DNA from: Monocercomonoides exilis PA203
Lineage: Eukaryota > Protista > Preaxostyla
Direction: 5' to 3'
Assembly: GCA_001643675.2 (NCBI GenBank)
Contig: LSRY02000061.1
Location: forward strand, 186,001-250,000
Length of the DNA stretch: 64,000 nucleotides
The notes under the pieces were generated by a model, which was not told the origin of the DNA, searched no databases, and saw only the letters and a program-made list of their open reading frames with translations. This document shows positions 9,188 through 33,072 of this stretch, one piece after another. Made by a program: the position numbers and the translations under genes. Every line of letters starts with the position of its first letter. Within the stretch, counting starts at the first letter, position 1.

Positions 9188-12100
9188 TCACCCATTTTCT
9201 CTCAAAGATGCTACAACCTCTTTCAACGAGCACCTTTCATTTGGATCATCTGCCCACATCTTCTCCATCAGTATAACCATTTCTTCTTCCTCTATCCCTT
9301 CTGTCAGTGGCCGAACGCCATCTCTCATCATCTCCTGTGCTTCTTCTGAATTGCACTCGCTCAAAGGAACTTCTCCTGTTATCATTTCATGAAGAATCAG
9401 TCCCAGCTTGAAAACAACTGCCTGTTCAATTCCTTCATCTTCCACTTCTTCATCTTCATTTCCCACTTCTGGTGCTTTCCATCGCTTTATTTCTTCTATT
9501 TCCTTTTCATCTTTCAATTCCTCTGTCAAAATGAATATTTCATTTGTTTCTTCCTCAACAAAGATCGAATATGTGCACAATTGTTTCCCCATCATTTCCA
9601 CTCTTTCGTCTCCAACAGTAATCAAATGTTCAAAAAGTCCTGCAATTGCCAAAATCACTTCCTTCCCATCAACAACATCCATCGCTCTTGTTCCCAGTGT
9701 GAAATTACCTTGAACTGAATGAATCGCAGAATGCAATGTTTTGATGTTCTTTTTCTCCTTTTCTCGAAATGGCTTCTTTGCTGATATCACATTGAGTGAG
9801 TGAGATTGTGACACTCCAGAAGCAGAAGCATTCTCAGAAAAAGGTACTGGAGATTCCAAATCTGGAAGATCATTTTCATTCAGTATTCCATCAGTCATTG
9901 AAGGAGGCTCTGGAAGATCTTCTTCATCGTTGTCAATCAGTAAAGGAATTTGACTTGACATTCCTTCCAGTAATGTGGATGGCATTTCACTCATCTCAAA
10001 GCTTCTTCCTTCGTTCTCTCTTCTCCTTTCTGCATTCCTCATTATCTGCTCATTTTCTAATCTCTCTTTTATAACTTTATTTTTTGCTTCCTTTAGTTTC
10101 TTTTGCAGCAGCACAACCACCACAATGAAAGCAATCATGGATATTAAAAAGAATGCTGCAAAAACAATCATCCCAATAATGGGCCACGAAAATTCAATTT
10201 CATTGTCTCCTTCAACAATGTTCCCTTCTTCATTTGAATGCGGATCGCTTCTGTTTTTTAGAACGAAAGCAACTGTGGAACTCAAAGCAGCAGGATCTCC
10301 AAATAGAATGCACACCGACACTTCTGTCTCCTCTCCTGCCTCATAAATCGTCTTTGAAGGCACTGCCCCCAACACTTCCGCCTCCGACACAAACCTTCCC
10401 TCTTCAAACGAGTATCTCTCCACCAACGCCTCCGACCCAACCCTCTTCACCACCCGAAACGACAGATTGCACGGCACAAGAAGTGATCCCAGGAACTTTA
10501 ACGTTGTCTCGCCTCCATTTTCTTCAGATTCCACTCTTTCCAGTTGTGGTATAAAAAACGCTGATTCTCTTTCTTCCGCAATCCCTTTCAGTGTGCATCC
10601 TTCATTTAGAATCCACAGCGACGACCCCTCCTTCACTCCGTCTTCTCCTTTTACACTTGCCACCTTTAACAACCCAGAGCCTGCACAAACGATATTTCTC
10701 CGAATTGACTGATAATTTTCTATCTTCGGATTGTTGTTTATGAATTTTCCATCCTCAATCATCATGCTCCCTCCAAACACGCTCATTCCTCCTATTGAGC
10801 TGTTTGCAATCGTGGTATCTTTCATCGTAGAGGTGCTGTTTTGCACGTCTGCAAGTGAGCCATTCCATGAACATAGCTCATTTGTATTGCAGACGCTGTT
10901 GTCCAAAACTTCTGAATTCTTATTTCCTTCAAATATGCAAAAATCAAATAGAACTTTAGAACTCGAACTAATTTTAACGAGAATTCCTCTTTTCAACGTT
11001 TGTGGTAATCCACAAAACGAACAATTTGTAAGAGTTAATTCCTCGACTGAAGTTGCAGATAGAAATTTAAAAGGATTAGCTGTAGAAGAAGCAAAAGATG
11101 AAGCAAGCGAGTTGTTTGCAAACTTCGAATGAGAAACATTGATTTCTTTGCTGTTCTCACAAACTATTGCTCCGTCGGAAGAACACATCGAGCTGAACTC
11201 TGAATAGGTCACAGAAACAGAACACGAAGAAGAGACTTGGATGACAGAATACAGCAGAGTTAGCGAGGAGAATAAGCAGGAGTTAATAGTTCCGTTCCCC
11301 TCGCTGAAGTCTAAAAGAGAAAACAGCGGAAGGCTCGATTCAGATGAAAACGAGCAGTTTGCCAGCTCAACCACTCCACAACGAGGAGAGATGAAAGACA
11401 AATGCGAACACACAAAATCTTGCTCAAAAATAAACCAAAGATTCGCAATCGAAACAACTTCCAAAGTTGCAATCACAGCTTCATTGGCTGATGATGCGAT
11501 GGAATTTATTGTTACATTGCTCTGAGACTTCGATCTCGAAGCAAGAAGAAGCCTATCCAGCGTGAGCTCTTCTTCAATGAAGGTCCCTCCGTCGACAATC
11601 AGACGCGAATCAAAATCTGAAGTCACATGCGAAACAGCATAACCCAGCGACAAGCAAGGCTGTACATATGTGCCACACCTCCTCTCGTTCTTCCCTCCCT
11701 TTCCGCTAACTGATGACACCACAATCGTGTCTGCCTGGAAGATTGTGATAAAATCCATCAGATTTGTATCTACTATGTGATCTGTTGTGTCGATCCCATA
11801 AATTGCATTCAGTCTCACATAAATGCTTTCCCGCATATCGAACCTGAACTGCGCTTCGTTGATCTGTTCTGAGATGCTGTTGCACGACACATAAATATCG
11901 TTCCCCACCTTTGCACTGTTCCCTGCAAACGACACGCTCTGGAACACGAAGTCCAGCACCCCGCTTCTCATTGCCTCGATGTAAAATACACCCCCTCTCC
12001 CTTCATCCGAGCAGCAACAACGAATTATCGTTGATTTCAAAACAGAAAATGAGCCCTCTTCTGGAAGTATGACAAACACAGCCCCTCCTTTTTGGCTTTG

Positions 12101-15100
12101 CCCCGCAATGCAATCGCTCACTGAAGTCCCATCTATCTCAATCCAAAAATTTCTTTCTCTTTTGCTGTTGATAACTGATGCCCCGTTGTCTGTTCTGCTC
12201 ACTGATAATATTGCCGACGAGTTCAGTCTCAATCCGCTTTTTTCATTTGCATTCACCCCCTTTGCTGAGCCTGCCACTTCCATAACCTCAAAGATGCTCC
12301 CATCTGAAATGTTCACAAATGTACACGTGAAATTGTTTGCCATGCAAGCTACAGACCCAATGAAAATGGCGCTTTTCCCAAGACTTGTCAACTCCATTGA
12401 CACTTCTGCAAGCAAAAGCTGCCCTCTAACGCAGACAATAAAGCTACACCTGCTAATTTGCATCCCTCCCAACATAACTTCTGCTCCCAACGAGCACTGC
12501 CCCAAAGACACCATCCCACTTTCACTCAAAATCACTTCCGAAGCAGAATTATCGAAGCTCGATGCAATGATCAATGAAATATACTTTAGGGACAGTTCCG
12601 CTGTGCATCGCAAAAACGGCTCTGATACTTCTCCTGCCTTTTCCCTAAACAGAAGCATCGACTCCTGTTTTTCTTCTTCCTCCAACGAGCTTGATTGGAT
12701 GGTGAAGTTGGAGAGAGTGAAGGTGTCCGCAACTTCAGTGGATTTGGTAATGGAGATGAGCTTTGGCGAGGCCTCGTTGCTGATCTGCTGCATCCCTTTC
12801 CAGAACGAGCAGCATGGATCAGCTGAGCTTCCACATCTCATCACATCCTCTCCGTCCGCCGATAGAAAAATTGAAGATGAGGTATAAGAAACCAAATATC
12901 TGAATAAATCCAGTTCTTCGCTTTCTCCTTCAATCCCCACAAACGCGTTGCTGTCTTCTTTCATCGACTCGAATGAAAATGCAAATGTTGCCAAAGTGAC
13001 TGAAGCGTTCAATTCAGTAGATGCAATAAATATGTTTTTCCCTAGCTGCGCATCATTTCTCTCAAACGTCATTTCACCTTCAAATCGTAGTGGTGTTGTT
13101 GCTGTCGATTTCGAGCAATCTACATATAAAAATCCCCCTTTCCCGTTTTTGATGGAGCATTTGCACAGCTCTGCTTGGCAGCTCTTTACACGCAGCAGGT
13201 CTGATCGCTCCAGACAGACAGACATTGCACCGCCTTCTGTGCTCGTGGGAGAGCAAATGTTGTGGAAGCAGCACTCCTCGAGTGTAACATAAGACGAAAG
13301 TGCGAAGGGGCAGCGTGCAAACACCAACGAAGAAACAGACACATTCAGCAGCTCAGCTGTTCCTCCTTTGTTTGACAGCAGAACATATTCCAGCACAGAA
13401 GTTGCATCAGAATGGAACGAGGTTGAGTTGAAGATGAGATACCCATCAGACGATGAAACAACGGAAGATCGTTCATTTGAAAAGAACGCAGGAAGATGGA
13501 ACTGCACAGAAGAAAATGAAAGCGAATTGTTCGAGCTGAAAATAGACTTGCTCGAGCCGTCTGATGTTTGAGAAATTGACAGTCTGGCGAATTCATTTGA
13601 AGCAGCTGCAGAAGACAATCCAATGCTGAGCTGAGAAAGGCCAAATTCATAGCACTCACATATTGCTGCCTCGTCCAGAATTTCAACAAAACATGGCTGC
13701 GAGTCTTCAATTGCTTGCAAGTTGTTGATGCCCCGCCACAACGAGTGGCAAGGTGTTTCTGCCTTTCCACACCCGATAAAGTCGATTCCAGCCGATCCAA
13801 CGCTTATCATCGATGAAGAATATTTCACCAAAAAATACAGCAGATCTGCTGAAACACTCACAAAATGCGTTTTGTCTCTTCCTTTCAGATCGACTTTTGT
13901 CTCTCCGTCTGCTCCAAAATACTCGAAATCAAACAGAGATGGAATGATTGACGCGTTCAAATCAGCGCTTCTCACAAACATGTCTTTCCCTTCAAATGCA
14001 TCATTTCCGCTGAATGTTAAATCAGAAAACAAATAGGCATTGACATTCTCCTTCAAATCGAGATAGATTCCGCCTCCTTTCCCATTAACCGCATTCACTT
14101 CACAAGATACAATTGATGTTTTGTTCACAATCAAAGATCCTTCTGCTTCAAGAATACAATTTAGAATTCCTCCATCTCCTTTTATCGAAGAACATCCATC
14201 AAATGTGCATGCTCCGCTAACATGTACTGATTTCGGGCAAATAATTTCCAATACATGTCCGTTTCTTGTTTCACAGTTAACGAATTCGGTGTTCTTAAGT
14301 GTAATATCACAATTGTCTCTTCCAACAATTAATCCGTTTGGAGCATCAGATGAAACAAAAGAAAAACTGCAAGACTCCAAAGAGAGTGATGCACCTTCAA
14401 TCGAAGCTATTCCGCCTGACAGAAATGGAATCTCTCCAAGAGCGCAAGAGGAAAAATGCACAACTCCGCCTCCTCCTGAAACAATCCATTTCGAAGGATT
14501 GGAATTTCTGCTGCTTCCTTGCTCAAATGAGCAATCGAAGAATGAGCATTGGCCAATGCTAACTTCCACAAGTGAACTCATTTCTGGTGAAGGATTGGGA
14601 GACGATGGAAGCACAAAGCAAAGCTTGGAAAATGTGAGGGTGGTTGAGCGAGTTCCTTCGACAAGCTCAAATTTTCCATTTCTTCCAAATATCATCGCTT
14701 TTGTTGTTGTATAACTTTGAATGGTGAGGGAGATTCCGCGCCTGTTCACAACAGCATCAATGGGGCTGTTTCCTACGAGCTGTATGATCGATTGAGAAGA
14801 ATTCATTTTATAAAAGCCCAGCTCCACTGAAGTGCATGGGTTCATCTCCAATCCACAGTTCATAGCAGCTGATGCACCTCCATCCACAAACACAAACGAG
14901 GTTGATGGAGGGAACAGATAGTCGATCATTGTGACACCTCCATCTGCCGGCTCAGACAGACGGCGCACCCACAGCCGGTCAGAGGCAGTGTCTTCAGATG
15001 CTGACCCATTCCAATACATCAGAAGGATTGCTGCCCCTGGCTCTTCGCAGACAACATACGCATCCTTCCCGCGCAATGCTCCGTTGTTCTCGAACGTGTT

Positions 15101-18100
15101 GTTCCTCATCGAGTAATCGAGATGGGAAGAGCCAAATGTGAGGAACAGCCCTCCCCCATATCCATCTCCACTGGACACAATGCAGAACTCCACTTTGTTT
15201 CTCTCGAATCGGAAGATGCCCCCTTCTTCCACATCCATCAGCACACACCCTCCAATCGTTCTTGCCGAATAGCATCCACACAGCTTGAATGAGCAGTTCT
15301 CCTCACCCAATACCTCGCCAGTACCCATTTCACCCACAATCACTCCTCCATCTCCGTTTGTTCTGCTCAGATTCGAAAATGTCACATTCTTCAGAAGACC
15401 ATTTGCCAGTGAATTAATTGTGATGTGGTTGTTGTTAGCCATCGTAGAATTTTCGATGTTGCTGTTCTCAATTGTCAATTTTTTCCCACTCGTAATCAAA
15501 ATCATAGCTCCCTCTTCTTCTCGGCTCAGCTTTGATGCTTCCATTCCTTCAATCGAACATTCAGCATTGTTTCCATTGAGTACAATAATCTCTGCATTTC
15601 CCATTGCAAAGTCCTTTATTTTACATCCATTCAATTCCACTTTCCCACTTGTTATGTGTATGATCCTGTACTCAACGGCTGAGCTGCTGCTGTTCTGAAA
15701 CTCACATCTGTGAATGGTAAGAGTGGCCGATGAGCACAGGAACAGAGTAGTGCGTGAGAGCTCGTCGAATGATCCTGGCAGTCCAAACACAATTTCACTG
15801 AACTTCACATTCACCGAAGAGCACAACAATCCGGCGCCTTCTCCAATTCCATCACTCCTCACGTCAGTTACGCCTCCAATCTGCTCAGCATTCACTTCGG
15901 TTGGCTGTGTGTCAAAAGATATTGCATCCTTGAAGGAAAAGTCCGCTGTCAGCCTGATGGATGCGCCAGATGAATTTGATGCTGGAAAGCGCTTGTAGAT
16001 CGTAAAGGGGATTGTTGCACAAGGGTATATAGAAACACCGCACATGCGATAGTCAAATCCAGTGTTTCCTCCTACAGTTGCAGGAGGCTCAAACGTCAGC
16101 AGAAACACAACCAAAGGAATAGCATACGAAACATTCCCATCTTCAAACCCACACAGCTTCCCAAACTCAGCTGTTGACTCTTTATCGATATCAAACTTGA
16201 ATGACTGGTTGGTGACGATTTTGTCCAGGCTGTATCCTTCAACAAACGCATTGCTTCCACCTCCCTCTGCTTCGTTGCTTGTGCCATCTCCCTCGGTTCC
16301 AAAGGATACAGCTGTGAGGACAAGATCAGCCAGCCAGTCTGCACACTTCAGAAATACTCCTCCCCCAAATCCACATTTTGGCAAGGTGCCTTTTGCACTG
16401 CATCTGGCAAATCTTGTGGCTGTGCCTTCCTTGCCAATCCGAATTTTTGCAGTGGAGCTTGTGCTGATGTATACCCCTCCACCACATCCCCTCACCGAAG
16501 AACAGCTATCAACTGAGACATCGTTCAGCTCCAGTGACTCGTTTTCACCAATGTCTGCCTTGATCACGCTTCCATTTCCTTCGTTTCTGGTGATCCCTGA
16601 AAAGGTGTTGTTTTCAACAACCAGACTTTTGCCATGCTTGCCTTCCACAAATGAGCAGCATGAAGAGGCAGATTGGCTGATTGTTGTGTTGTGCATGCTC
16701 AGTGTGCCAGCTGATGAGTATGCGATGATTCCTGTCTCAACAGCAGATGTGACATTTGTCCATGTGCACGAGTCAATTGCTCCACTCCCTTTGCTGCACA
16801 CTTTCACCATCTCGGCTGACTGAAGCCCGATTGAGTTCACTGTGAATCTGGTCATCGCAAACGAGCCTTCAACAACAGCCAAAAACCCAAAAGCGCATTT
16901 TTCTTCACCTTGTTCAGATAGTATTGAGCAGTCTTCCAGATTGAGCATCGCATTTGCACTGCACACAAGATACACCGATGATTGAGGGCTGGGGATTGTT
17001 GGCTGCAGGCAAAAGGCGAGATGTTTCCATGCTGATGCTTGCTCGATTCTTATCATCGCTTCTGATGCTCCTGTCTGGGCACCAATCATCCTCATCTTTG
17101 TTTCTGCCACTGTGCCTTTAAATGTGATCTCGTTGGTGCCTGAGAGGGTGATTGCCTCGCTGAGTGCATAGACTGGATGCACAATCAGTTCTCCTGACTC
17201 GTCTGTTCGCTGCGTCAGAGCAAAGGTAATCGTCTGGCACCCATAATCTGCGAATCCGCATGCAGACACATCGTTTCCTTCTGAAAGCACATGCACATCT
17301 GATTCACGAGGCAGCAGATAAAACACAAGAGGGATAGCAACACTCGGCCATTTGGAATCGGTTCCAGCACAGCTTTCAGGAGCAAATGGCGCATCTTGAT
17401 GGAAGAACTGGAAGGCAGCTGTGGTGATGCTGGATGTCAGATCGGCAGAGGACACAAACAAATCATTGCCATGCTCAGCTGTGTTTGAGGCAAAACTCAG
17501 GGTATTTGCGAGAAGATATCTGGTGTTGACTTCAGAGAAATCAATGAGAACGGCGCCTCCCTTCCCTTTTGAGCCTGCACTTGGCTTTGGTGCCTGGCAC
17601 GATGTGAATGCAGATGACTCGAGTGTGAGTGCTGATTGGCTGCTGATGTGAAGCGCAATGGCTCCACCTCCTTTGCCATTTTCAGTCGCTGTGCATTTTG
17701 TGAATGTGCAGTTGCTTGCTGTGAACGAGCTCGCAAAGCCACTTCTGGTGTTCAGAAACACACATGAACCATCTCCTGCTGTTCTTTTGATCTCTTCAAA
17801 AGTGGTGTTCTTTATAGTTATCGAATATGTTCCTGAGGAACTGACGATAAATGCAGAACTTGTCAAATTTGAGCTACGAAATGTGCTGTTGTTGATTGTT
17901 GTGATGTTCCCTGAGTCGACAGATATCAGCCCATTGCTACAAGATGTTGTCATTCCATTTGCATCCAAAGCGTCGAAATCTGCAGAGGCGCTTCCGCTGA
18001 TGGCAACAAACGGTGCATTGCCAAAACTCAGCTTCTGTGCAAGAGGAGCAGCAAAGTGAGTGATTGACAGTTTTCCACTTGTGATCTTCACGAGGCAATA

Positions 18101-21100
18101 CGAAACAGAAGCACCCGAAGCAGCTGGCACAGCCGCGCAGTCAGTCACCGACAGCACATTAGCATTCGAGAGGATAAAGGCGCTCCTCCCATTCAAAGAT
18201 GCCTCGAGCACAAACTTGATTCTGCTGAAACTTGTCTCCACAGAATTGATCAGAAGCCCCTCACTCACTTTCGCTTGCGAGGAGCCAACATTGATGGGCA
18301 TGCTGTCTTCTTCAGCATCAAACGAATATGATTGACTGTTGAGGAGCGTTTCTGTTCGGAAGGAGAAGGAAGGCAGAAAGCGAATATTTCTCTTTGTGCT
18401 GGCAAATCGCGCGGCTGAAGCGCCTTCCACGCTCTGGCACGGATAGTCGCTGTATCCGCAAAAACGATAGTTGCTATCAGTGCTCTGTCCAGACACATAT
18501 GCTGGAGAAGTGAAGTTCCTCAGAAACACAACAAGCGGGATGACCATGTTTTGATCTACGTTCTCCATCCCGCTCAGTTCATCCAGATCTGTCGAATCAA
18601 CAGCAACAGAAGGGTTGAATGCCAGCGTTGCTGCGTTAATAACCTTTGACAAATTTTTGCTTTCAATAAATACTTTTTTCCCTTTCCAGCCGTTGCACAC
18701 AATAAACTGAAGCATTTTGAGCTTGAAATCATCGGCTCCCTCCATAACCTGTATATAGATTCCTCCTCCTTTTCTCTTTTTCTGGCTGTCTGTAGGAACA
18801 GTGCATGTGTCGAACATACAGTCAGAATCCGCCCCAATTTGCGCATTGCTAAGTGCATCTAGCTCCAGATACAACGCACCTCCATTCCCATCCAAGCACT
18901 TGCAGTTCTTCATCGAAACATTTGAAAGAACAAAGCTCTCTTCTGCTTGGACAGCCTTGCTGAATACTGAGCCATCGCCTGTCCTGCGACTGATCATCGA
19001 TATCTTCGCATTGCTCAGCACAAGATGCGCCTGCTGCTCCGTGGCAAACAACGATGTGCTCTCAAAAAGCACAGAAGATATCTCACAACTCTCGAGAGTG
19101 GCCCTGCCCTTTGTCAGCACAAAGAACGGTTTGTTGAATGCAGCTGAAGTTGAATCAGCCTTCAATGTGCATTCATGCAGCGCAAGCACAGAATCCTCGC
19201 TGTTCTCAGCAAATAGGCATTTATCTGGAGAAGATGTCGAGCTGTGAACAATCTGCATTCCGCGCATGGTCAACGATCCACCAAGAAGAGTGCAAAATGC
19301 GCTACTAGATGGTATTGTACGTATTGTTATACTCGATGAAGAAGTGTTCTTTTCAATGATAATGTTTTGAAAAGTGAGCGGAATTGAGGCCTCTGAATAT
19401 TCTCCAGAATAGAGCTTGATCGATGTGTGAAAAGAGTTTACCCAGTGATCGCAAGAATAGCCCAATGTGCCGCATTCATTTGAAAGATCGCCACATCCAG
19501 CCACATCTCCAGACTCTCGCATTGGATCCACATGAATAACAGTTCCAGATGGATTCGGGGTTAGATTGTTTCGCTCTTCTCCACTTGTGCACTTGCGAAG
19601 CCCTTGTGTGCACATCCAAACTCTGTTTTGTTCACTCAACGAAAAGCAAAATTGGAAACAAGATGAGTTCATAAGATTATAATAATTTTCTGTGAAAGCA
19701 ATATCATTTCCGATTTGTGCTGTGTTATTAGCAAAAAAGCAAAATGAAAATTGCAGCGCATAAACAGCTTTGCTATCTTCCCTCATTACATATATTCCGC
19801 CTCCAATTGTATCAGCAAAGTTAGAATTGACAAGCCAGTCACTGGCAGTCATCGAAGAAAAAGTGTTGCACAACATAATTGCTCCTGCTTCACCGTTCCT
19901 GCTTTTGCTTTGAATCATTTTTAAAGTTGAACAAACAATAGGAGCTGTTGATCCATAAATAATTCCAATTCCTCGGAGATCAGCATCACATTGAGAAGCA
20001 TTTAAATTTGAGATTGTGACGGAAGAATTTAAATTTTCTATTCGCATAAATGCTTCCGTTGAAATAGCGAAACATTTTTCAGCTGAGCAATTCTGAATTA
20101 ACAATGGTCCAACATTGTATAAATATAGAGCTCCTCCGTATCCATCTGTAATGGTATTGTTGCATCTATCAAAGAAGCATTCTCTCATTGTGAACGAATT
20201 CGTTTCACGTGCAAAAACAGTTCCTCCATGCGTATCATTACCATTAACATTGAATATTGTCTGCTCAATCACAACGTCCCCGTCTGAGCTGTAAAATACT
20301 TGCCTGTTTTGCTCAGTTACTGTGCAAGCAAAAAAGGATGTGTTGTGACAAACAAATGACGATAGCGGCTTGCCAATTACAAGCACAGAGCAGAATGGAT
20401 CCTCCACCTTTGAAATTTCGCACTCAACAACTGAACTCTCTCTTGTCTTCAGTAAAAATTGTTTGTTAACGGTGTTGGAACTGCAATGGCTTATGTTTCG
20501 AAATGTGCATCCCATTATGAAAAACTTATCAATGTTTCCCGAAGCAGCAAGTGGATAAGCTGTTTTAACAGCAAGAGAAGAAAACGCAGAAGACTGCAGA
20601 CAGAGCGAGCTTTCATTGTGCAATTCTGCAATGGCACCTCGAACGATATTTTGCTTTTCAAAATAGGAGATGGAGATGTTGGACAGTTCAAGCACACTGG
20701 ATAAAGAAGAAAATGGTGCGGTATTACAATTGGACAAAATCAACATGCAACTGTGAACAGTGCACTCTGATCCTTGCACAATGGAAAATAAAGAATTATC
20801 TCCCTGTTGAAGAAGAATTGTTTGTGACGCATCCAATGAAGAATTAATTGTGCTGATGGATGATGAAAGAACGCTTGAAGCCTCATGGGCGTTGGGATTG
20901 TTGATTGAAGAATAAGACTGAATTGATGAAATTTCCAGTTGTTCTCTTCCTTTGAATTTTTCGCTTGGTTCATGATTTTTAATGAAGGAAATGCAAGAAT
21001 AGTAAGAAATGGCACAATCAGTTGTTGTAATTGGTAATGCACAAAAACTTGACTTTATCTCCGTAGTAAATCGAAATTGAAGCAAAATAAGAAGGGCTAC

Positions 21101-21926: not shown

Positions 21927-21930
<4 letters not shown>

Positions 21931-22004
<74 letters not shown>
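21931..22004 (+). repeat. (TC)37 microsatellite
   Basis: Perfect TC dinucleotide run of 74 nt in the spacer between the two divergent receptor genes. Confidence 0.97.
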
Positions 22005-22011
<7 letters not shown>

Positions 22012-24937
22012 TCTCCAACTTTTTATTCAGCTGTTCCATCGTGTCTTGTCTCCTAATTGCGAGTCTCGTCTCTTCCACTCTGCCCACAAGCCATCACATT
22101 TCAATGAATCAATCTGATTCCTTCGCCCAGTTTATGACAGATCGCTAATTCAAACTGAATGTTGATTCAAATGACAGAAGATTGTGTGTGTCGATGAAGA
22201 ACAAGAAATATCACCTTTCTGAGTGTTGGCAATCGATTGGCAATCATCAGACAAAATCATCAAGAAGAAATGTGAAACAGATGCAAAGATGACAGCGGAG
22301 TGTGCTGCTGAAGAAACGCAATTTCATCTCAGAGTCTGATTTGACAGAGACTCAAATAAAAATACTTCTTGAAAGTTGAGGAAGATGGTGATGAAGTTGA
22401 TGATTAAGCGAAAGCTAAAGGAGGTTATTCGCTTTCCAGCAAAATTCAGATGCGGATATTTGGCGTGCAGTTTCCATTTGTGTTGAATTATCTTTCGATC
22501 TTCTTTGATTCTTTTCTTTTTTTCTTCCATTATTCCTCACTTTATTTCTTTTTTGTTGCTATCAGCATCCATCTTTCGATCATCAAAACCCCATTGAAAG
22601 TTATCATCAATCCACTCACAGACACGAAACATCAGATGCGCAGTTGATATCTCTCGTTAATACACATTCAGAAAATCGTCTTCTAAAGCGAACCTTCGCG
22701 TCTGTAATGAAGGTTATCTTTCACGAGCGAACCAAATGCACCTTGAACATATCCTGAAATAATAATGCTTTCATTAAACATTCATCAAGATAATAAGTGA
22801 TGATTGTGCAGTCTTCGCAAACCTTTTGTTGCAAAATCAGCGTGTGCCCATGAGACATCACCGATGAATGCACACTTGCCATTTCCTCTAAGCGTTGCTC
22901 AAAGCAATCCTCAGAAGCAATACCTTTTTTTAAAAAGTGATTTCACAAAATACCTCCACGAAACCGCTGAATATCAGCTTTATAAATAAGCAGCCGTACA
23001 ACAAAAGAAAAAATAAAAAAAATAAGTTTGCTCAAAAAAGCGTTATCCGCCACACACTTCACTTCGCGGGATGTCTTTTTTTTTTTTAGAAACTAAAAAA
23101 CTGCGATTTCTTCTTTGAGTTGCAATACATCCATTCAATTGCAACAAAAATGCAAATTTGACCTTCATTGTTGCGTTTGCAGACAATTCGTTTCCCCTTT
23201 CACTTCGAAGTTTTTCCCTTTAACTTGAAATAATGCATTTTAAAGCATTGGACGAAAAATATTATAAAATCAATGCTGATTCCCGTTCAACGTTGTCAAA
23301 CTCTTCTGCCCACAATTTATTAGCATTACGCATTATAATGATCATCCATCCATCTCTATATTGCTTTTTAGCAACAATTTTGCAAATAATAAAAACATCA
23401 TGCAACTTATTGGATTGATCAAGTTTGAGAACGTTTAATATCCTTTTTGCCAAGCGTTTTGATGTTGGTGCCTGCAACCTCTTCAAATGGAAAGTTGAGC
23501 AATTATGCTATTTTCATGGGTAAAGAGACTTATATTTGCTTGGCTATCGGTATATTTGATGAAATATTCACTTGGCTGATTCCTCAATAAAGAATGACTC
23601 AAAGACAAAATTCTTCGTAAAAACATTAGACAAACGCTTGACAAACATGCACGCACGATATAATTATATATTTATTTTCAATATTGCCATTTTTTCAATT
23701 GAAAGAACTTATTTTGGAGTTTGTTGAAAATTCATAAATCAACTCAAATGAAAGACATGAAAATTGTGGTTATGGAAATACACACCGAGTTTGTTTTACA
23801 ACAAAAAGAAGCGAGAATTTAAGATTTTTGAAGAACAGAAAAGAGACATTTCGAATGAAAACATTTAGGCAACAGGACGGACATTAGGCTGGAAATGAAG
23901 CAGTTCAAAAATAATAAACTGGCAGAATAACCAGGGAGGAACATCTCAAAATGCCTTTTGAACAATGTTCATTGCGAATTAATAAACAAGTTCGTTTGTT
24001 CCATTCTTAATTATTTTTTTTTTTTTGAAGTTTAATGAAACTCCTTTTTTTTCCACATTTATTTTTCTGATTGAAAACAAAAAGTGAAATTAATTCGATC
24101 CAGGGAAAGAGATGCAACAGAGAGTGGGCAAATAGGTGAGGAAATGCGTTTTTTGATGACGGATTTACTGTGACAAATATGTTGTTGAATTCTTCGAATC
24201 TTTATATTTATTGGAAGAATATTTTTTGTAGTTTCCCTGTGATCCACGAGAAGAGATGAGAACCATCCTGATCCTCCAACAATTCTGAAACTCCTCAAGA
24301 AAATGAGGATTGAGGGCAATTTTTCTTTGGCGGTTGTGTATTCGTTTTGACTCAATTACGCTGTGAGATTATCGAAAGTGGAGTACAAATGAGACAACAT
24401 ATTCATTTTCAGGCAACTTATGTGGAATTTGGCTTTGAAAAACAAGAGCTGCAATAGTTTTTTGAAAAAAAAAAATACGAAGTGTGTTGCTAGAAGATGT
24501 GCTTTGCAAAGAGGATAAAAGAGGAAAAAAGCCCAACAAAAAATTGTTATTTCAAGTTCGAAAGAAAATTCCGACAACTGAGTCAAAGAATTGAGTGAAT
24601 ATTGTTGATTTGAAAAAATCAATGAAAAGAAACAAACGTTATTTTTCTCATTCTCCAGTATTTATTGAAAAGGCTCAAATAACACTCAATAAAAATGTTG
24701 GATATTCCTGCTTTCCGAATGAGAAAAATCGAAAAAAGAATATTTCATTGAGCTGATTGAATTGTGTGAAGAAAATGTCACATAATGCAAAGGCGACAGT
24801 TGAAAAGAAATTTGGTGAATTGAAGAAAAGGGAAATAATTGAAAAAATGATATGATGAGAGAAATGAACCCATAATGCAAAGAACAAAAAAAGCAGGAAA
24901 TTGGAGAAGTTCCAATTTTTGTTCAAGCAAAGCACAA

Positions 24938-27900
24938 ATGATGTCTGGAATGTGTTTGCTTGTTATCAGTATTTGTGTGCATTGCACGCTCAATTATGCC
25001 ACAAGCGAAGAAATGGGGAAGATGGAAAAAAGTGTGAGAGAAGAAAAAATGAGTTGTTGGCCCAACGATCGGTTAAATTCTTTCCAAAAGAGTTTTGAAG
25101 AAAAAGAAATTGCATTGAGAATGGAAGCAAGAAGTTCTTCCAATGAAATGAAAAGGATTGAAGATATTGAAAATAATGGAAGAAATGATTGCGAGGATGC
25201 GAACGATGAATCTCATGAACGCAATGAAAGAGGAAATTTTCTAAAAAGCAAAGAAGAAATTATGAAAATTGGAAAAACCCATGAAAAAAGTGAAATTGAA
25301 GGAAATTTTAATTCGCCAATTCTTCATCAAGACTCATTTATTTGTCGATGAAGGGAGAAAGAAATGGAAGAGTAATTCAGGCAGGAAATGGAAGTTTTGT
25401 TGAAATGAGCGAATGTGAGCTGTCAGTTGAATCTCCAGAGCCTCCAATTGCTATTCGTGGGTGTTGTGGGACGATAGTTAATATTTCACTTTATTCATCA
25501 GTTTGGAACTTGCATGATTTTCCTTCTCTTTTTGCTTCAGAAGCAACAACCAGCTGTTTTCTTGAGGAAGGAACTGCTTCAGTGAGTGAATCTCGTTTCT
25601 CATCTTTTTGTGTTTCGTCAGACCCGTTTTTATCATCTTCCAGCATATCCATTTTTTCGCTCGCAAATTTGGAATTTTTCAACATCTCGATTTCTCCTTC
25701 GCAGCAGCCTTCAGCACATGGATTTCCCTCAAAGAGTTCGACATTAATGAGTTGTTGCTCGTTTTCAAGTGTTTGTGATGTTTATGATGACGGGATTGTT
25801 CCTTCTCTGAACAACCCTTCAGCTTCGTTGTCTGCTTCGAACATATCATTTGTGGGATCCCGTCGGACAAGAAACGTTGAATTCATCGGGAGAGAAAGTG
25901 ATAAAAAGCATCCAGGGAGACAGAATGAAACGGACAATGGAATGAATATATTCACTTGGTGCGTATGGAATGACTCAAGAACCACTGGAGAAAATGCCAC
26001 ATTGGAAGATGGCGCTTCAAACGGTGGAGCAATTTTTATGAACGGTCTTCCATCAGGAATGCTTTCAGTGGAATGTTGTTCGTTCAATGATTGCTATGCA
26101 TATGGTTGTGGCGGAGGAATTTTGTGTGTTTCAATAAATTCTATCAAGATTGAAAACAATTCATTCAACGCCTGTACAATCCAAAATATTAATGGAGGAG
26201 GGATATGTGTTTTTGATATAACAACGTGTGTGAGGATTGGTGGTTGTGAATTCCAGAATTGTAAGGCAGATAGCTTTGGAGGAGGAATTCTTTTATCAAC
26301 TTTTCAAGTTTCTGGATCTGACTGTATTGGAACAGAAAATGGCAAAGGAGAGAGCGCTTGTGTGTTTGAGTGCTCATTCACTGCGTGCTCGCTTTCAAGC
26401 CAATATGGCGGAGGTTTGTATTGCTATTGTGTTCCGGTTGCATTCAAAATGAGGAGCCTCCAATTTATTTCGTGCTCGGCTGTATCATGTGGCGGAGGAT
26501 TGGATTTTGAACCACATCAATCAACAGCTCCAAGCAACAACACATATTGTTATTTTCTCTTCTTCCACAATTGCAGATGCACTGATTCCACTCCATATGG
26601 TCATGATGTGTTCATTTATGATGGATTCAATCTCTTTTATTCGAATAATCCGTTCTACGAATCGTTCACAATGAATAGCGATAATAGGAGAGTGTGTTAT
26701 GCTGACAGTAATTGGGTGTATCAGCACACAGAAAAGAAAGATTGGTTGAGTGTCGGGATGAAGTATCGGTATGTTGGGGTGAGTGGGGATGACACAAACA
26801 ATCTGTGTGGGATGATCGAGTCGGCGTCGTGCAAGACAGTGGGGCATGCGGTGGAGACAAGCATGGTGCAGCTGAGCTCGACAATCACTTTGCTGGGTGG
26901 GAAGCATGCGAGCGAAGAGAAGACGATCAGTGTTGGGGAAAAGAAGATTTCTATTGTTGGGAGAGGGAAGGCAGTGAGTGTGGTTGGGACAAGTGCTCTT
27001 TCTTCGACTTCGACAACGCTGTTAAGCATATCTTCTGGCCAACTGGAGGTGGGACATTTGGGGATCTACCACAATGCAGCAAGAAGTCCATCGCCGAGTG
27101 TGTTTGTGGTGTCACTGGAGAGCGGGGCTCTTTCGTTGGAGGATGTGATGATCTCATGTACAACTGGAGGAAGTGTTATATCAGCATCTGTGTTTGAAGT
27201 TGCACTGAAACAGCTGAAGATGGCTGATGTGGAGATCAAAAATATGAAAATAAATCAACCTTTGTTTGTCGAACCGTCATCAGGATCATCATCAGGAGAA
27301 AGTGTGCTGGGGAATGTGACAATTCGGAATGTGAATCGGACAACAGGTGATGGTGTTGTGTTGGCAAAAAGCGTGAAGGGAGGAGAGACATTTGCTGTGT
27401 GGAACACAACGATTGAGGAATGTGAGTGTGTGAATGGAAATGGAGGAGGCATTAAGGTTGAGTTGGAGTCATCAACAAGCAAGGTTCTGATTGGAGATTC
27501 AATATCAAACAGCGGAGGGACAACTTCGTTCAATCAATGCAAATGCAGTGGATATGGAGGAGGGGTGATGCTATGGCTGGCAGATAATTCGTTTAATTTT
27601 ACAATAACATCAGTGAGTTTTGTTGGATGTGCTGCAACGTTGGGAGGGAAGAATTTGTTTGTGGAATCACAGGATTTATCGGATGTTATCAACACCACTT
27701 CAATTGGATTCAATCCAGAAATTGGAATTAATGTTGCAGACTTGAATGAACTTTGTGGAAGAGAAAGAAACAACCTGGAGCTGATTGTTCCACTTGTTGT
27801 GTTTCTTCGAACATTTTCATCTCCAGCATATGTGAGTGGGAGAGAACAAGGAAGTGAATTCAGGCTGTGTGGATATGAAGATTTCCCATGCATAGGAATT

Positions 27901-30900
27901 GGGAGTGTTGGAGAAGTTCAGTTTCCGAGTTCAAAGAGAGTGATCAGACTGACAAGCACATTTTCATTTGTTGAAGAAGTTCAGTTGGATGAGCAGTCAT
28001 ATGAGATTGATTCAAGTGATGAAACTTTTGGAATAAAAATCGAGGCAACAGGAACAAAAACGCAAGAAGCGTTGGTGATGAACAGTGTTTTATCAACATT
28101 GACAGGGATATTATTTGAATTGGGAGGATCGATTTGGGAACATACATCATTTGTTCATTCTTCAGGAGGGACATTGAGATTTGCTGATTGTGGGATAAAG
28201 ATGGGAAGCGGGGTGAATTCTGCGAATTATGTGTTTGCGAGTGCAAGTGGAGGGAAAATTGAGATTGTTGGGACGAGGTGTGGAGGGAGTGTGGGGGAAG
28301 TGAGATTTGTGGGAAGTGTGATTGTTGTGAATGGAAGTTGTGAATGTCTGATGGATGAGGTGATAATCAACCAAACAACAACAAATGAAGTGAGTGGATT
28401 GGTTGAGATTGCAACAAGCAGCTCATTCACAATCCAGAATTGCTCGATCACAAATTGTGATCTGCCGAGTTGTGGAGCAATTCAGGTTGATAAGTGTTCA
28501 ACAACCACATTGAAGAACACCTCATTTGAGAACATCACGAGAGGGAAAGGAGATGGTGGATGCGTTTGTGTTGATTCAAATGAAGATGGGAGCAAATGCA
28601 CAATCAGAATTGAGAACTGTTCATTCATCTCATGTGAGGTGAATGAGAAAGGGAAAAGAGGAGGAGGATTGTCTATTTCATTGAATAATCCGTCTGAACT
28701 CTTTGTTTCATTAACAAGATTTGAGAAGTGCAGTGCGCTTTCAACGAGTGGAAGTGAAGGGAAAGGAGGAGGGATGATGCTTTCTGTGGCAGACGAAGAT
28801 ACAAAGTTTGAATTATCAGGAAATTTGATATTTGATCAGAATAAGGCAGAATATGGAAAGAACATGTTCGTTTCAACAACTGATTTGAACGAAAGTGTGA
28901 CAAATAACTCATTTAAGTTTGATTATTCATCAATGATAGATGATAACAATTTGTTTGTTGGAAGTGATGATTTTCATCAAGAAAAGGATTTGTTTATGTT
29001 TCTGATTCCGTTCAGCTCATTTGAGATATTTATCTCGTCAGAAGGATTTGATGTTGCAAGATGTGGAAGTGAAGAAGAGCCATGCTTCACAATGTGGAAA
29101 GGGATGGAAAATATGAAAGAGGGAAATAAAATGAAAACAATTCAGATTGAAAGATCAACAATTATTAGAGATTCATTCAACATGTCGAATTATTTAATCA
29201 AAAAGAGTGTAAAGATGGGAGAGGAAGAAGTGAAAGCAGAATTGAATTTTGAAAAGGCAATTGGAAATCAATTGGAATATTTCATCGAAAATGAAATTCA
29301 TCTTGAATTGACAAATGTCCAGCTGCAGCTTGCATCTGTATTTGACAATTCAGCCAAAACAATAATTTCAAACAAAAAAAGTGAGTTGATGATAACCAGA
29401 TGTTCATTCCATTCAGAAGCTCAAGTGAACAATGGATTTGATTGTGTGTTTGTCGATGCTATTGGAGGAAGTGTGGAAGTGAATGATTTGTCGATGGGGT
29501 CATGCAATGTTGGAAATAGTATTTTTGTCATTCATGATTCTGGAGTCTATTACCATTTTTTGAATGTTCAAGTGGAATCGTTGAATGAAAGTGGAGGATG
29601 CATTATCTCAATCATGAAATCTGAATCAGGATTGAAGATAAATGAAGAATGTGTAAATATTGAGATTGACAATTCATCATTTTCAGGAGTAAAGAGAAGT
29701 GACAATGGAGCGAGCATTTTGGAGTCAAAGAGTGAGATAAAGATTTGTTTGATTATGAATGAGAGTAACATCACAGAAGACAAAGCAGAATTGAGTGAAA
29801 AAGGAGGGGCAATATTCTTCACATTGGGTGCATCAGGATCAATGAAGATGATTGACTCAACAATCAGCCATTGCAGCTGCAGTGGCTCCACGGGGAAAGG
29901 AGGAGGAGTGTATTTGGCAGCAAAAGAAAGAGGTGATTTGAATTTCACATTTACGGGAATGAAATTCAGTGCAAACACAGCAAAAGTGGGGAATGACATT
30001 TTTGTCGAATGTTTCAACATCACGTCGCAGATCAATGAAAGCCAATTTCAATTTGATCTTCGAGAGAATCATTATTCACGAATAAATGCAATATATGGAA
30101 AAGATGAATGTGATTATCCAATCGATACAAATCTGATTGAATTTGTGACGATTCATCTGAGTGACACAATTGTTGTTTGCAGTGTGAATGGATCGAATGA
30201 CAGACAATGTGGAACAAATGCTCTTCCATGTGATTCAATTGAGCATGGGCTGGTCCATCTGACTTCAGAGCTAATAAGTCAAATACTCGTGATAGAAGAG
30301 AGTGTGGATGGTGATGAGATAAATTTGAAGGAAATGAGTCTGAGTTCAAAAAGCAGAGAGATGTGTAAAGTTGAAGTGAAATCAAACATTGGAAAAACAA
30401 AGGATTCTTTGATTTCAACAACAGGAGCTGTCTCATTGCTAAGAGTGAACTTTGTGTTTGATTTAGATTTCGTCTCTTCTCACGAATCACTGATATCACC
30501 AGAGGGAGGGATTCTTGAGATAATGAATTGCTTATTCACAACAAAACAATCAGCAGAAGAAGGAAATTCAGAATGTGCAACTATTCCATTTCACATTATC
30601 AACATGGAAAAAGGAGAATTACAACTTGATGGATGCACAATATCAAATCTCATTCTTCATGAGTCTGCATTAAATCTTTCATCGCCACTTCCATCGGTAA
30701 TTTATTCATTAACGATTTGCAATTCAACAATTTCTCGTTCTTTTGTTGAAATTATTGAATGTGGGCAGTTGAATATGGAAAAGTTGCATATAGAAAATAT
30801 CACAGTTGAAGGAGATGAAGAATCATTGACATTTTGCTTGTCAATGAAAAAGACGATGCATTTGGCAAATTGTTCAATATGTGGAGTCAGTTCAAAGATC

Positions 30901-33072
30901 ACAAAAGGAAAATTGATGAAATTGGAGAATTGTTTGGATGTGAAAATGGACAGCTGCGTTTTTGATGGAAGTGAAAAGGAAAGAAATGAGCAATATTTGA
31001 ATTCAGGAGAAGAGTTGTGCAGATGGGGTGGATCTGTCGTGGATGTTGTGAAGAGTTCTGTGATGATGAAAGACACAACAATATCGAATTCACCAGAAGG
31101 TGGAATAACAATTAGTGGAGGAAATGTGATAATTGAGAAAGGAGAGTTTTTGGACAACAATCCTTTCATCGAAAAATATCCCTCCCTTCATCGCAACATC
31201 ATCTGTTCAGATTCAGGAATATTGAATGTTTTGAGTTTGAAAGGAGGAGATGGATTGAAGGATAATTCTTCTCTGTGGATACTGAATGAAGGATGCACAT
31301 TGGGAGGGATTGCTTCAGAGAGGGATTCATCATTCTTCATCCCTGTGTTGGAGAGTGTGTCAAGCGAGGAAGATGAAGGAGAGATAAAGCTGACGTTCAC
31401 TGGGTCTCTGCTTCTGCCATGCAACTTGTCATTCGAGTTAATATCGAAAGTGGGAGATGTGGATGTGATTGACAGATACACGTTTTGTTCAGATGAGCAT
31501 GTGAATGAGAGCAGTGCAGTTGGAAGGATTCCGTCAAGTGTGGTGAAATCGGCTGCAGAGGAAGCAGAGGTGTCGGTGTGCATCTTGTTTGGCAAGGCAG
31601 ACTCTCCTTCGTCAACACAATCTTTCATTCTTAAGAACAGAAGCGAGCCCAAGGCTAATGGAGATGAAAGGATTGTTGAAGGAGGAAAAGAAGGGAAATT
31701 ATCTTGGGCTTTTATAATTGCAATAATATTTGTTGTTTTGTTTTTGATTGTTCTTTTCGTTGCAATTGCCTTTATTGTTCGTTGGAAAAAGCAAAAGAGA
31801 AGAACAAAAGAGCTGGAAGTGATTGTGGAAGACACCGTGAAGAAGGATCCAAAAGCATTTGAGATGGTGACGATGGAGATGTCACCTGAGGAGCAGTGGA
31901 GGAGAGCAGAGAGAGAAGCTGAAAAGAAGAATGAAGAAAACATGAAGAAGAGGGCGTATGACAAGACATTGGGACATTCTGAGTCATCTGAGCATTTGTT
32001 GAGTGAGAGTGGATCGACTGAATATATTCTGGGGAAGGACTCAGACAAGATCCCTCAATGGGTGCTGGAGAAAGATGAAGAAGAAGAGATAAGGAAGAGA
32101 ACACCATCTCCATCCGTCTCATCCACTTCAACCACAGACACTTCAGATACAGACACAACATTTGTTCGAGGGGAGGACCTGTGCCCAACAACATCATCGA
32201 TGTCGAATCTTGTCGATGCCATGGCCTGTTCATCACCTCATGAGAAGCTGATTGTGGATTTGAGGGATTCTTTGTTCATGCTGCTTCATGGAAAGAATAA
32301 GACAAAGGAAATGGAGATTGGCACCCTGCAGGAGAGGGAGATGACAGCTGCCCAAATCCTATTCTGGGTTGCGAATGGAGCACTCCATTCATTTGATGAA
32401 ATGGAAAACCCGCTTCAGTCATTGGACAATCTGAGTTCTCATATTGTTCTTTTCTCTGAGCACATGGTCATCTGCCTTGCGATGCACTCTGGCTATTCTT
32501 CTGATGATTCAGATTCCTCCTCAACTTCCTCGTCCTCCACCATTGCTACATCATCATCTGACATTTCGTTGATGAGCGAGAGATTCACAGACTCACCTCC
32601 GCCCTCATCTGCCTTTGAGGACGAGCTTGACAATAGAGATGAGTGTTTGAGATGGAAGGCGCCAGAACTGTTGAATGGACAAAAGAAGCACGCAACGAAG
32701 AAGACGATTGTGTTCTCGATTGGGATGATGCTGTGGGAGTGTCTGACGCTTCAGGTTCCATTTGGGGAGTATGAGGCAGAGGTGGCTGGACAGAAGATTA
32801 TGAATGGTGCAAGGCCAGAAATTGAATCGATTCAAAACTCCAAACTGGCAAATCTTGTGAAGAGCACGCTTTCGTCAACAGTGTCAGACAGACCATCTCT
32901 TGCGTTTCTCAAAAGCGAATACATCCGACTTTTCCCTCAAAACGCATCCAGATTCACAGTTTCTGATGCAATAAACTTGATGGTTGAGTCGAATTGCAGC
33001 GAATACAACAATGGTAGCTGCTCGACAAAGAAAGCCAGCAGGACCACAAATCAAACATTGTTTGAGCAGTAG
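24938..33072 (+). CDS. Giant receptor-like protein paralogous to 9188..21109 (4 ectodomain modules, TM, pseudokinase C-lobe); reading frame broken by a -1 shift at ~25312-25349
   Basis: The signal-peptide-like start MMSGMCLLVISICVHCTLNYA at ATG 24938 lies in ORF 24875..25351, while the body is ORF 25342..33072 in another frame. Four CG..C motifs. Membrane-proximal block KGGDGLKDNSSLWILNEGCTL..FFIP.LE..GSLLLPCNLSF is highly similar to the paralogue. TM WAFIIAIIFVVLFLIVLFVAIAFIV. RWKAPELL..IVFSIGMMLWECLTLQVPF..DRPSL. Confidence 0.85.

Follow-up and report, generated by a model that had tools for sequence, protein, structure and literature searches.

Genes A and B of Monocercomonoides exilis, a gut flagellate and a model eukaryote without mitochondria, are probably (at roughly 0.6) type-I receptors of a very large oxymonad family that combine a ligand-binding beta-helix ectodomain with a dead-kinase docking scaffold. 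The ectodomain consists of a head and a chain of whole right-handed beta-helix domains, followed by a stem of ~100 aa and one transmembrane (TM) helix. Rather than acting as enzymes, the beta-helix modules would be ligand-binding, with glycans of bacteria, mucus or food particles in the host gut as the most likely targets, and module number would set reach and valency. The dead kinase, together with a conserved Ser/Tyr-rich juxtamembrane segment, may form a docking scaffold that couples binding to cytoplasmic partners, for example in adhesion or phagocytic uptake, by analogy with pseudokinases such as ILK. That the family recognises bacteria or the host is something we purely infer. Both genes lie in the window, the whole stretch of 64,000 nucleotides that was analysed, as does a shorter relative, gene C. 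Gene A is laid out as follows.

9188-21109, minus strand: gene A, an intronless ORF of 3973 aa with signal peptide, head, eight predicted beta-helix modules, stem, TM helix and short-class pseudokinase tail
19562-21109, minus strand: signal peptide and head (aa 1-516), with a hydrophobic N-terminus; the head is a putative divergent beta-helix region
18521-19561, minus strand: module A1, type 1 (aa 517-863); cap motif, BLASTP, module HMM
17321-18520, minus strand: module A2, type 2 (aa 864-1263); sub-threshold Pfam Beta_helix match, E 0.002
16103-17320, minus strand: module A3 (aa 1264-1669); cap motif, BLASTP, module HMM
14918-16102, minus strand: module A4 (aa 1670-2064); cap motif, BLASTP, module HMM
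13832-14917, minus strand: module A5 (aa 2065-2426); cap motif, BLASTP, module HMM
12896-13831, minus strand: module A6 (aa 2427-2738), the shortest, without HMM positions ~190-259
11747-12895, minus strand: module A7, type 7 (aa 2739-3121); counterpart of B3
10487-11746, minus strand: module A8, terminal type 8 (aa 3122-3541); counterpart of B4
10181-10486, minus strand: membrane-proximal stem, ~100 aa; no Pfam match
10106-10180, minus strand: TM helix (aa ~3644-3668)
9191-10105, minus strand: cytoplasmic tail, with a kinase C-lobe remnant at aa 3868-3969 (window 9203-9508)

Genes B and C lie on the opposite strand.

24875-25351, plus strand: upstream ORF of gene B, with signal peptide and K/E-rich linker, offset by one base from the frame of the main ORF
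25342-33072, plus strand: main ORF of gene B, 2576 aa; the annotated model (P0001) has 2574 aa, an internal Met start and no signal peptide
25342-26742, plus strand: head (ORF aa 1-467); head HMM
26743-27807, plus strand: module B1, type 1; a mosaic of module 1 and the end of module 3 of the paralogue P0004
27808-29001, plus strand: module B2, type 2, used for fold prediction; its last ~48 aa resemble the end of A6 more than that of A2
29002-30147, plus strand: module B3, type 7, counterpart of A7; BLASTP, module HMM
30148-31404, plus strand: module B4, type 8, counterpart of A8; BLASTP, module HMM
31405-31707, plus strand: stem; no Pfam match
31708-31779, plus strand: single strong predicted TM helix
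31780-33069, plus strand: long-class tail, with juxtamembrane helices, a disordered Ser/Thr-rich linker and the pseudokinase; Pfam C-lobe match at 32632-32913
54083-56089, plus strand: gene C, with signal peptide, one head-like putative beta-helix (ORF aa ~131-445), TM helix (window 55757-55834) and an acidic tail of ~80 aa

The modules are marked by a cap motif, CG.{5,6}C, found in gene A at window positions 19495, 18460, 17260, 16042, 14857, 13771, 12835 and 11677 and in gene B at 26806, 27868, 29062 and 30208. These positions fall within 6 nt of those from which the original prediction had counted eight and four modules; each gene contains one additional match that is not a cap. Gene A thus has nine motifs, against a mean of 0.7 and a maximum of 5 in 2000 shuffles, and gene B five, against a shuffle mean of 0.5. 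Caps in gene A are spaced by 312-406 aa, and module size is about 310-420 aa. The inter-cap segments are homologous by BLASTP (20-38% identity, up to full length), with A1 pairing with B1, A2 with B2, A7 with B3 and A8 with B4. Moreover, a 391-position module HMM tiles both genes without gaps (E 1e-99 to 1e-123 per module for the six unsplit modules of A), head to tail, reaching ~100 aa before the single TM helix. Across an alignment of 109 modules, columns C21, G22, C28, G321 and G350 are invariant, the conserved residues are exclusively C, G, P and L, and the C-terminal consensus reads G.GG.V ... FS.N.AS..G.D, in keeping with the predicted module end G(K)GG(G/A)(I/V)..FxxN.

The fold of the module is predicted with high confidence to be a right-handed parallel beta-helix, as had been proposed. 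The AF2 model of module B2 has a pLDDT of 91.5 and a pTM of 0.90, and DSSP assigns it 36 strand elements, most of them short. Its best VIA match is PfbA (3zpp; Z 25.0, rmsd 3.2 over 322 residues, 10% identity), a surface adhesin of S. pneumoniae with one beta-helix domain, whereas the M. exilis proteins chain 4 to 34. Z is at least 20 down to rank 43 and at least 18.4 in all 50 matches listed, and the recognisable ones are right-handed beta-helices. Structural neighbours in the Atlas are prokaryotic Beta_helix and Chlam_PMP adhesin-like clusters (PF13229, PF02415; TM 0.55-0.74), and the Foldseek matches in the PDB, at E 2e-3 or worse, are all beta-helices. As the VIA matches illustrate, this fold is just as characteristic of polysaccharide lyases and hydrolases: PL6 lyases, RbmB, the AlgE4 epimerase, polygalacturonases and phage depolymerase tailspikes are among the top matches at Z 20-25. 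The modules could then be surface-anchored polysaccharide-degrading enzymes (lyases, hydrolases or epimerases) acting on bacterial capsules, mucin or dietary fibre. We consider this very unlikely, given that none of the columns of the 109 aligned modules holds an invariant or near-invariant Asp, Glu, Lys, Arg or His, that the top match is a non-enzymatic adhesin, and that no CAZy-type Pfam family scores above threshold.

The likeness to chlamydial Pmp adhesins noted in the original prediction is real but remote. GGx(I/V) and FxxN motifs on a right-handed beta-helix are common to the M. exilis modules, chlamydial Pmp (PF02415) and prokaryotic and trichomonad Pmp-like proteins; however, each 370-aa module contains the motif once or twice, in place of the dense array of Pmp. 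No Pfam match to a Pmp-type autotransporter beta-barrel was found in A, B or C, which instead have a single TM helix, joined in A and B to a pseudokinase tail. With Pfam and NCBIfam, the modules and heads of the window gave nothing above threshold. The best window module for PF13229 (Beta_helix) is A2, with 18.1 bits against a cut-off of 25.9, and for PF02415 A1 and A5 reach 14.9 and 12.9 bits, below the cut-off of 20.6. Elsewhere in the genome, more than 100 giant ORFs pass the PF13229 cut-off; of two examined, one (L007) has module and tail matches and the other (L004), which ends with its stretch of DNA, module and head matches only. Six giant paralogous ORFs pass that of PF02415 (24-25.6 bits), and the one examined carries both module and tail.

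Length varies in whole-module steps, as anticipated. Over 157 paralogues, the span from the first module to the TM helix rises by 367 aa per module (r2 0.99), with a gapped histogram. Annotated proteins have 2 to 18 Cys-capped modules, and one ORF has 34. Module types, assigned approximately as the nearest module of the window, follow a fixed order, and types 7 and 8 almost always adjoin the membrane: gene A reads 1-2-3-4-5-6-7-8, gene B reads 1-2-7-8, and the strings 1678, 1278, 17678 and 12345678 occur in 25, 16, 8 and 2 proteins, respectively. Close paralogues differ by whole modules, and the breakpoints are in register and lie inside modules. B1, for example, is 62-92% identical to module 1 of P0004 over columns 0-360, beyond which it is 84% identical to module 3 and 30% to module 1; likewise, module 1 of P0002 switches from module 1 to module 2 of P0004 at column ~280. 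Such in-register mosaics, together with the whole-module differences, are the typical trace of exchanges between adjacent modules and adjacent genes, by unequal homologous recombination or gene conversion.

It is tempting to see in this a recombination-driven recognition repertoire, in which the ectodomains of hundreds of receptors would be shuffled continually, one module at a time, by in-register unequal recombination and gene conversion, while all would feed one conserved dead-kinase signalling hub and discriminate bacterial prey, symbionts and host surfaces. If so, the repertoire would be functionally comparable to the diversified families of innate immune receptors in animals and plants, but we rate it as a speculative and distinctly unlikely extension. 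No sign of diversifying selection appeared in the pairwise dN/dS between B and its closest paralogue P0003, which is below 1 except in one 100-codon window with very few changes. By NG86, this pair gives 0.25-0.39 for the ectodomain, 0.16 for stem plus TM helix and 0.07-0.14 for the tail, values blurred by gene conversion, since dS ranges from 0 to 1.15 along the gene. Purifying selection is thus far stronger on the tail than on the ectodomain.

The original picture of the ectodomain, a passive stalk that presents a special recognition head, found no support: in the B/P0003 pair the head has a dN/dS of 0.36, like the modules (0.25-0.39), and it is the more conserved part. Its sequence is indeed divergent, but the head itself, judged from profile comparison (hhalign against the modules, 95.9%, E 6e-9), is a divergent beta-helix related to them. 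The head HMM matches gene A at aa 156-509 (E 1e-84) and gene C with E 4.8e-11. In accordance with what had been predicted, gene C has the head domain and zero modules, with no CG.{5,6}C caps; Pfam finds no kinase remnant in it. We also considered whether many members are truly head-less and rejected this as unproven; the head-less gene models are probably 5'-truncated, because 57 of 60 also have no signal-peptide-like N-terminus.

One strong TM helix is predicted in each of A, B and C, as expected from the original prediction, which had also given all three a signal peptide; this applies to A and C and not to B as assembled. The ectodomain has 16-18 N-glycosylation sequons per 1000 aa, and Cys makes up 3.7-4.1% of residues outside versus 1.0-1.6% in the tails of A and B. 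An intracellular pseudokinase was likewise predicted for the family; A and B have it, as a C-lobe only, and the ~80-aa tail of gene C has no kinase remnant.

According to modelling, what the tails retain is a TKL-type kinase C-lobe that is well folded (helices F to I, with the APE motif). In the tail model, residues 142-240 and 283-400 are folded and helix E is preceded by just two strands; the best fold match of the model is ILK, followed by BRAF, TAK1 and RIPK1; the top PDB sequence matches of the gene A tail are MLKL and TAK1. The PF07714 profile scores 32-49 bits, above its cut-off of 23.1, which, together with the TKL classification in PMC6759080, would favour active receptor kinases of the tyrosine or TKL type, in line with the annotation. 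Yet the match covers only positions ~153-258 of the 258 in 17 of 18 matched tails (161-258 in gene A), and in one Blattamonas tail it extends back to position 97. HRD, DFG and VAIK were found in 0 of 114 tails and are likewise absent in Blattamonas; G.G..G occurs in 6 of 114, which is chance level. APE is present in 107 of 114, and the segment equivalent to the catalytic loop reads LSPH..(I/V)L. in both M. exilis and Blattamonas. Without a Gly-loop, the VAIK lysine, HRD and DFG, and with an N-lobe reduced to two strands at most, the tail is therefore no conventional kinase, and active kinases are scarcely credible. ILK and MLKL, TKL-related non-catalytic scaffolds, are the nearest to the tail by fold (ILK) and by PDB sequence (MLKL). 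However, these proteins, and the receptor pseudokinases of animals and plants, keep a bilobal fold, whereas the N-lobe of the M. exilis tail is a hairpin only.

A comparable design is found in the transmembrane kinases of Entamoeba histolytica, a large family of type-I receptors that pair an ectodomain of Cys-containing repeats with a kinase-like cytoplasmic domain; some of its members are catalytically dead and some tied to phagocytosis. In contrast to M. exilis, the Entamoeba ectodomains are CXXC-rich rather than built of beta-helix modules, and many members keep complete kinase domains.

A different function would be mainly that of a variant surface coat, a protective variable glycocalyx like the Giardia VSPs or trichomonad BspA/Pmp-like proteins, with few copies expressed at any one time and a tail that serves sorting or anchoring only. 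The hundreds of paralogues in M. exilis, their mosaics from recombination and the sequon-rich, Cys-rich ectodomain would suit such a coat, as would some members with 10-18 modules that have tails of only 32-49 aa, and the 34-module ORF, whose tail has no kinase remnant. Nevertheless, constraint is strongest in the pseudokinase and juxtamembrane region, both conserved as far as Blattamonas; this exceeds what an anchor needs, and we regard the coat as unlikely.

As assembled, B has no in-frame signal peptide, which may reflect either an inactive copy or a single-base error in the assembly. Its neighbour P0003 reads through in frame, with one extra T near 25310 relative to B. A 1.47-kb RNA contig with the extra T was considered as evidence of an assembly error in B, and this was rejected: the contig agrees with P0003 at 25 of 26 variant positions, is therefore a P0003 transcript, and is not evidence on the frameshift of B. 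P0003 is transcribed; the RNA contigs over the 5' end of B belong to it, and B itself is supported only by a few exact RNA contigs of <100 nt. No GT-AG joints were seen in the RNA comparison across 6 kb. The frameshifted signal peptide of B, the stop codons in several genomic matches and the overlap of the family with the 'unclassified repeats' described in the assembly paper could all be expected of decaying repeats, most copies of which, including B, would be functionless pseudogenes. This is highly improbable, since most matches are stop-free open frames of 2,300-4,500 aa, dN/dS is well below 1, P0003 is transcribed and the architecture is kept in Blattamonas.

By homology, genes A and B are members of what is known as the 'tyrosine kinase' family of M. 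exilis. Of 201 homologues matched, the best 120 are all from M. exilis, at no more than 81% identity, with MONOS_ names and PF07714, and several are annotated as 'putative protein tyrosine and serine/threonine kinase'. Karnkowska et al. 2019 (PMC6759080) and Treitli et al. 2021 (PMC8767320) describe 'protein tyrosine kinases' as the largest gene family of the species, with 332 predicted tyrosine kinases, 320 of them TKL, and note its overlap with the 'unclassified repeats' of the assembly. The kinase label used there rests on a C-lobe-only match. The passages of these papers that were consulted contain no description that we found of the ectodomain, its modules, the beta-helix fold, the quantised lengths or the missing catalytic motifs.

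The family forms a sizeable part of the M. exilis 'unclassified repeats' and is so far listed simply as tyrosine kinases. Recognising its members as giant surface proteins of many beta-helices, with dead kinase tails, would change how the kinome, surface biology and repeat content of this species are read, to which the whole-module quantisation and the design common to Blattamonas also contribute. The proteins would serve as a natural and tractable case of how a eukaryotic surface protein family generates modular length and variants, and as a candidate for particle recognition by a bacterivorous gut flagellate.

In the M. exilis genome (82.3 Mb, 101 contigs), a genome search scored ~100 of 11,038 first-pass candidates, so that our module and gene counts refer to a sample of the genome. 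When proteins of 219-696 aa were searched by words from the module profile, M. exilis alone was matched. Members also occur in Blattamonas nauphoetae, so that the architecture is kept in a second genus; the taxonomic scope of the large profile search is the best 150 of its 7,844 matches. The ~100-aa stem has no Pfam match in M. exilis, and a TIG domain is present in a single Blattamonas member only.

Two large members of one gene family lie in divergent orientation in the window, and a third gene was pointed out in the original prediction:

9188-21109, minus strand: gene A, uninterrupted ORF of 3973 aa
25342-33072, plus strand: gene B, uninterrupted main ORF of 2576 aa
54083-56089, plus strand: gene C, the third gene

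The original prediction described the ectodomains of A and B as tandem modules anchored by a CG..C motif, and every motif position was matched to within 6 nt, giving eight modules in A, four in B and none in C. The pattern has one additional, non-cap match per gene in A and B, and the mean number in shuffled sequences is 0.7 (A) and 0.5 (B). The modules are true repeats, as the inter-motif segments are homologous over their full length (20-38% identity by BLASTP), with A1 pairing with B1, A2 with B2, A7 with B3 and A8 with B4. An HMM of 391 positions tiles A and B continuously (best E-value 1e-123) as far as a point some 100 aa short of the single TM helix. When 109 modules are aligned, both cap cysteines, the glycine following the first of them and two glycines of the terminal motif are invariant, and that motif, G.GG.V ... 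F..N.A..G.D, is present at the module C-terminus as described. Taken together, motif positions, homology, HMM tiling and invariant columns indicate that the modules were correctly described.

The length of the ectodomain varies in whole-module steps, as had been proposed. Across 157 paralogues, stalk lengths, taken as the span between the first complete module and the TM helix, cluster in separated peaks at about 925, 1260, 1613, 1988, 2388, 2728, 3117 and 3406 aa for two to nine modules, and regression on module number gives 367 aa per module (r2 0.99, residual SD 50 aa). When each module is typed by its nearest counterpart in the window, the order follows a grammar: 1678 occurs in 25 proteins, 1278 (the pattern of B) in 16 and 17678 in eight, with 12345678 (the pattern of A), 1245678, 12678 and 178 being rarer. 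Types 7 and 8 are terminal in nearly all typed proteins, and giant members carry tandem runs of type 2 modules.

How such steps arise is visible among the close relatives of B, namely P0003 (four modules, 87% identical to B), P0002 (five) and P0004 (six). Over alignment columns 0-360, B1 is 62-92% identical to module 1 of P0004, but its last 40 columns are 84% identical to P0004 module 3 and only 30% to module 1. Likewise, the source of P0002 module 1 changes from P0004 module 1 to module 2 at about column 280. These breakpoints are in register and within modules, as expected from unequal recombination between adjacent homologous modules, which shifts length by whole modules. The same mosaic pattern may be faintly visible at the much greater distance between A and B, in the few residues at the end of B2 (the last 48 residues share 46% identity with the end of A6 and 26% with that of A2). 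In addition, the first 100 codons of the B main ORF (25342-25641) are, at the DNA level, 100% identical to P0003 (locus L001), as against only 84-85% in modules B2 and B3, and this stretch is a tract of gene conversion linking two genes some 100 kb from each other.

The prediction that the modules form beta-helices agrees with a confident model of the single module B2 built from the 109-module alignment (pLDDT 91.5, pTM 0.90), to which DSSP assigns 36 mostly short strand elements. Foldseek returned exclusively beta-helix enzymes, with weak E-values, and an exhaustive VIA search gave a Z of 25.0 to the pneumococcal adhesin PfbA. Matches with a Z of at least 20 extend down to rank 43 and include PL6 lyases, AlgE4, polygalacturonases and phage tailspikes, all right-handed parallel beta-helices; in the ESM Atlas the neighbours (TM 0.55-0.74) are adhesin-like proteins of archaea and bacteria with PF13229 and PF02415. 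That the modules are enzymes is the less probable reading, these enzyme matches notwithstanding, there being no conserved catalytic-type residue among the 109 aligned modules. The suggested analogy to chlamydial Pmp adhesins holds as a real though remote relationship, but not as membership of the Pmp family, since the autotransporter barrel is absent. The window modules fall below the Pfam cut-offs (Beta_helix 18.1 bits, Chlam_PMP 14.9 bits); genome-wide, over 100 giant ORFs exceed the cut-off for PF13229 and six do so for PF02415. Of three such ORFs examined, those at loci L005 and L007 each carry both the module and the tail of this family, and the one at L004, which is truncated where the retrieved sequence stops, has module and head matches only.

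Like the modules, the head is a beta-helix, though a divergent one, and hhalign relates it to their C-terminal coils (95.9%, E 6e-9, 148 columns). Gene C was proposed as a head-only member; its profile match to the head (E 4.8e-11) and its lack of modules bear this out, but its tail is short and acidic and shows no kinase remnant. A handful of small proteins are paralogues of C.

The intracellular domain of A and B had been called a pseudokinase, and this reading is well supported by the Pfam span, missing motifs, modeled fold and structural matches. In A, B, eight M. exilis paralogues and three of four proteins from Blattamonas nauphoetae, the Pfam kinase model matches only at profile positions ~153-258, the C-lobe; in the fourth Blattamonas tail the match extends back to position 97. 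HRD, DFG and VAIK are found in none of 114 tails, APE in 107, and both genera have LSPH.(I/V)L. in place of the catalytic loop. The AF2 model of the B tail predicts juxtamembrane helices, a disordered Ser/Thr-rich linker, only two strands before a confident C-lobe (pLDDT >90) and a disordered insert in the activation segment. In fold it most resembles the pseudokinase ILK, with BRAF, TAK1 and RIPK1 next, and the top PDB sequence match of the tail is MLKL. The label 'tyrosine kinases', under which the family appears in passages of the literature (PMC6759080; PMC8767320), covers the C-lobe remnant only. Neither the ectodomain and its module grammar nor the pseudokinase character of the tail is described in the sections consulted of the Preaxostyla comparison and of the two genome papers on M. 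exilis.

Codon-by-codon comparison of B with P0003, its neighbor on the same contig about 100 kb away, identifies the tail as the most constrained region of this pair, with a dN/dS of 0.07 for its juxtamembrane part and 0.14 for the pseudokinase. Stem and TM helix together give 0.16, and the ectodomain is relaxed (0.36 in the head, 0.25-0.39 across the four modules). The head, called divergent in the original prediction, is no more variable than the modules in this pair, and dN/dS detects no positive selection on its ectodomain. Values of dS along the gene start at 0 (first 100 codons) and go up to 1.15, indicating patchy gene conversion. The ectodomain follows a signal peptide, is rich in cysteine and dense in sequons; given also the adhesin-like fold and the lack of conserved catalytic-type residues, A/B-type proteins are probably exposed binding proteins. 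A role as a variant surface coat we rate lower. The strong conservation of the dead kinase and juxtamembrane segment points to a docking role in the cytoplasm.

A signal peptide was predicted for all three genes, but for B this fails in the assembly: the peptide is encoded by an ORF of its own (24875-25351), whose frame is shifted by one base relative to the main ORF, and an internal Met is the start of the annotated model (P0001). P0003 (G000:C60:320036-327997) has one extra T near 25310, through which the frame reads, leaving the gene intact. The break in B reflects a genuine frameshift or else an assembly error of one base, and we consider widespread pseudogenisation less probable than a family of exposed binding proteins. 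RNA contigs spanning 24883-26370 (four runs, one study) carry the P0003 letters at 25 of 26 variant sites and hence prove transcription of P0003, not of B; only a few short contigs (each <100 nt) that match B exactly, within divergent B2/B3 sequence, suggest transcription of B as well. No GT-AG joints were seen across 6 kb of RNA-contig comparison.

With B as query in a word search, the best 120 of 201 proteins are all from M. exilis. A profile search recovered 7,844 cluster representatives at E <=1e-3 and 464 at <=1e-30, and 20 sampled matches came from M. exilis (11), B. nauphoetae (8) and a Logan contig (1). Annotated members reach 7,986 aa and 14-18 modules, some having tails of only 32-49 aa. 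In the 82.3-Mb assembly searched (101 contigs, including the window), one uninterrupted ORF of 16,665 aa with a signal peptide (G000:C36:143885-193882; loci L011, L006, L012-L015) carries 34 CG..C-capped modules, the highest number among members examined, spaced 381-536 aa apart (mostly 420-480); its TM helix near aa 16,234 is followed by a charged tail of 411 aa without the kinase remnant. Of the Blattamonas members P0253 and P0244, one is named 'PPM-type phosphatase domain-containing' in UniRef and one has a membrane-adjacent IPT/TIG domain, indicating that tail and stem architectures differ between genera.

The remaining genes of the window are eukaryotic and include a DENN protein, a COPA/B-type coatomer subunit and a PP2C. 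ORFs of 1,066, 474 and 513 aa (57379-60579, plus; 42552-43976 and 44129-45670, minus) have no Pfam match. A 370-aa ORF (52692-53804, plus) matches Pfam Sortilin-Vps10 (E 1.2e-14) and BNR/Asp-box repeats; Karnkowska et al. (2019) report that they were unable to find the cargo receptor Vps10 in M. exilis. At 204-8501 (plus), in a 2,765-aa ORF, the window edge falls within the C-lobe of an ordinary kinase, and the other ~2,700 aa are Ser-rich/acidic low-complexity sequence with strongly negative GC skew.
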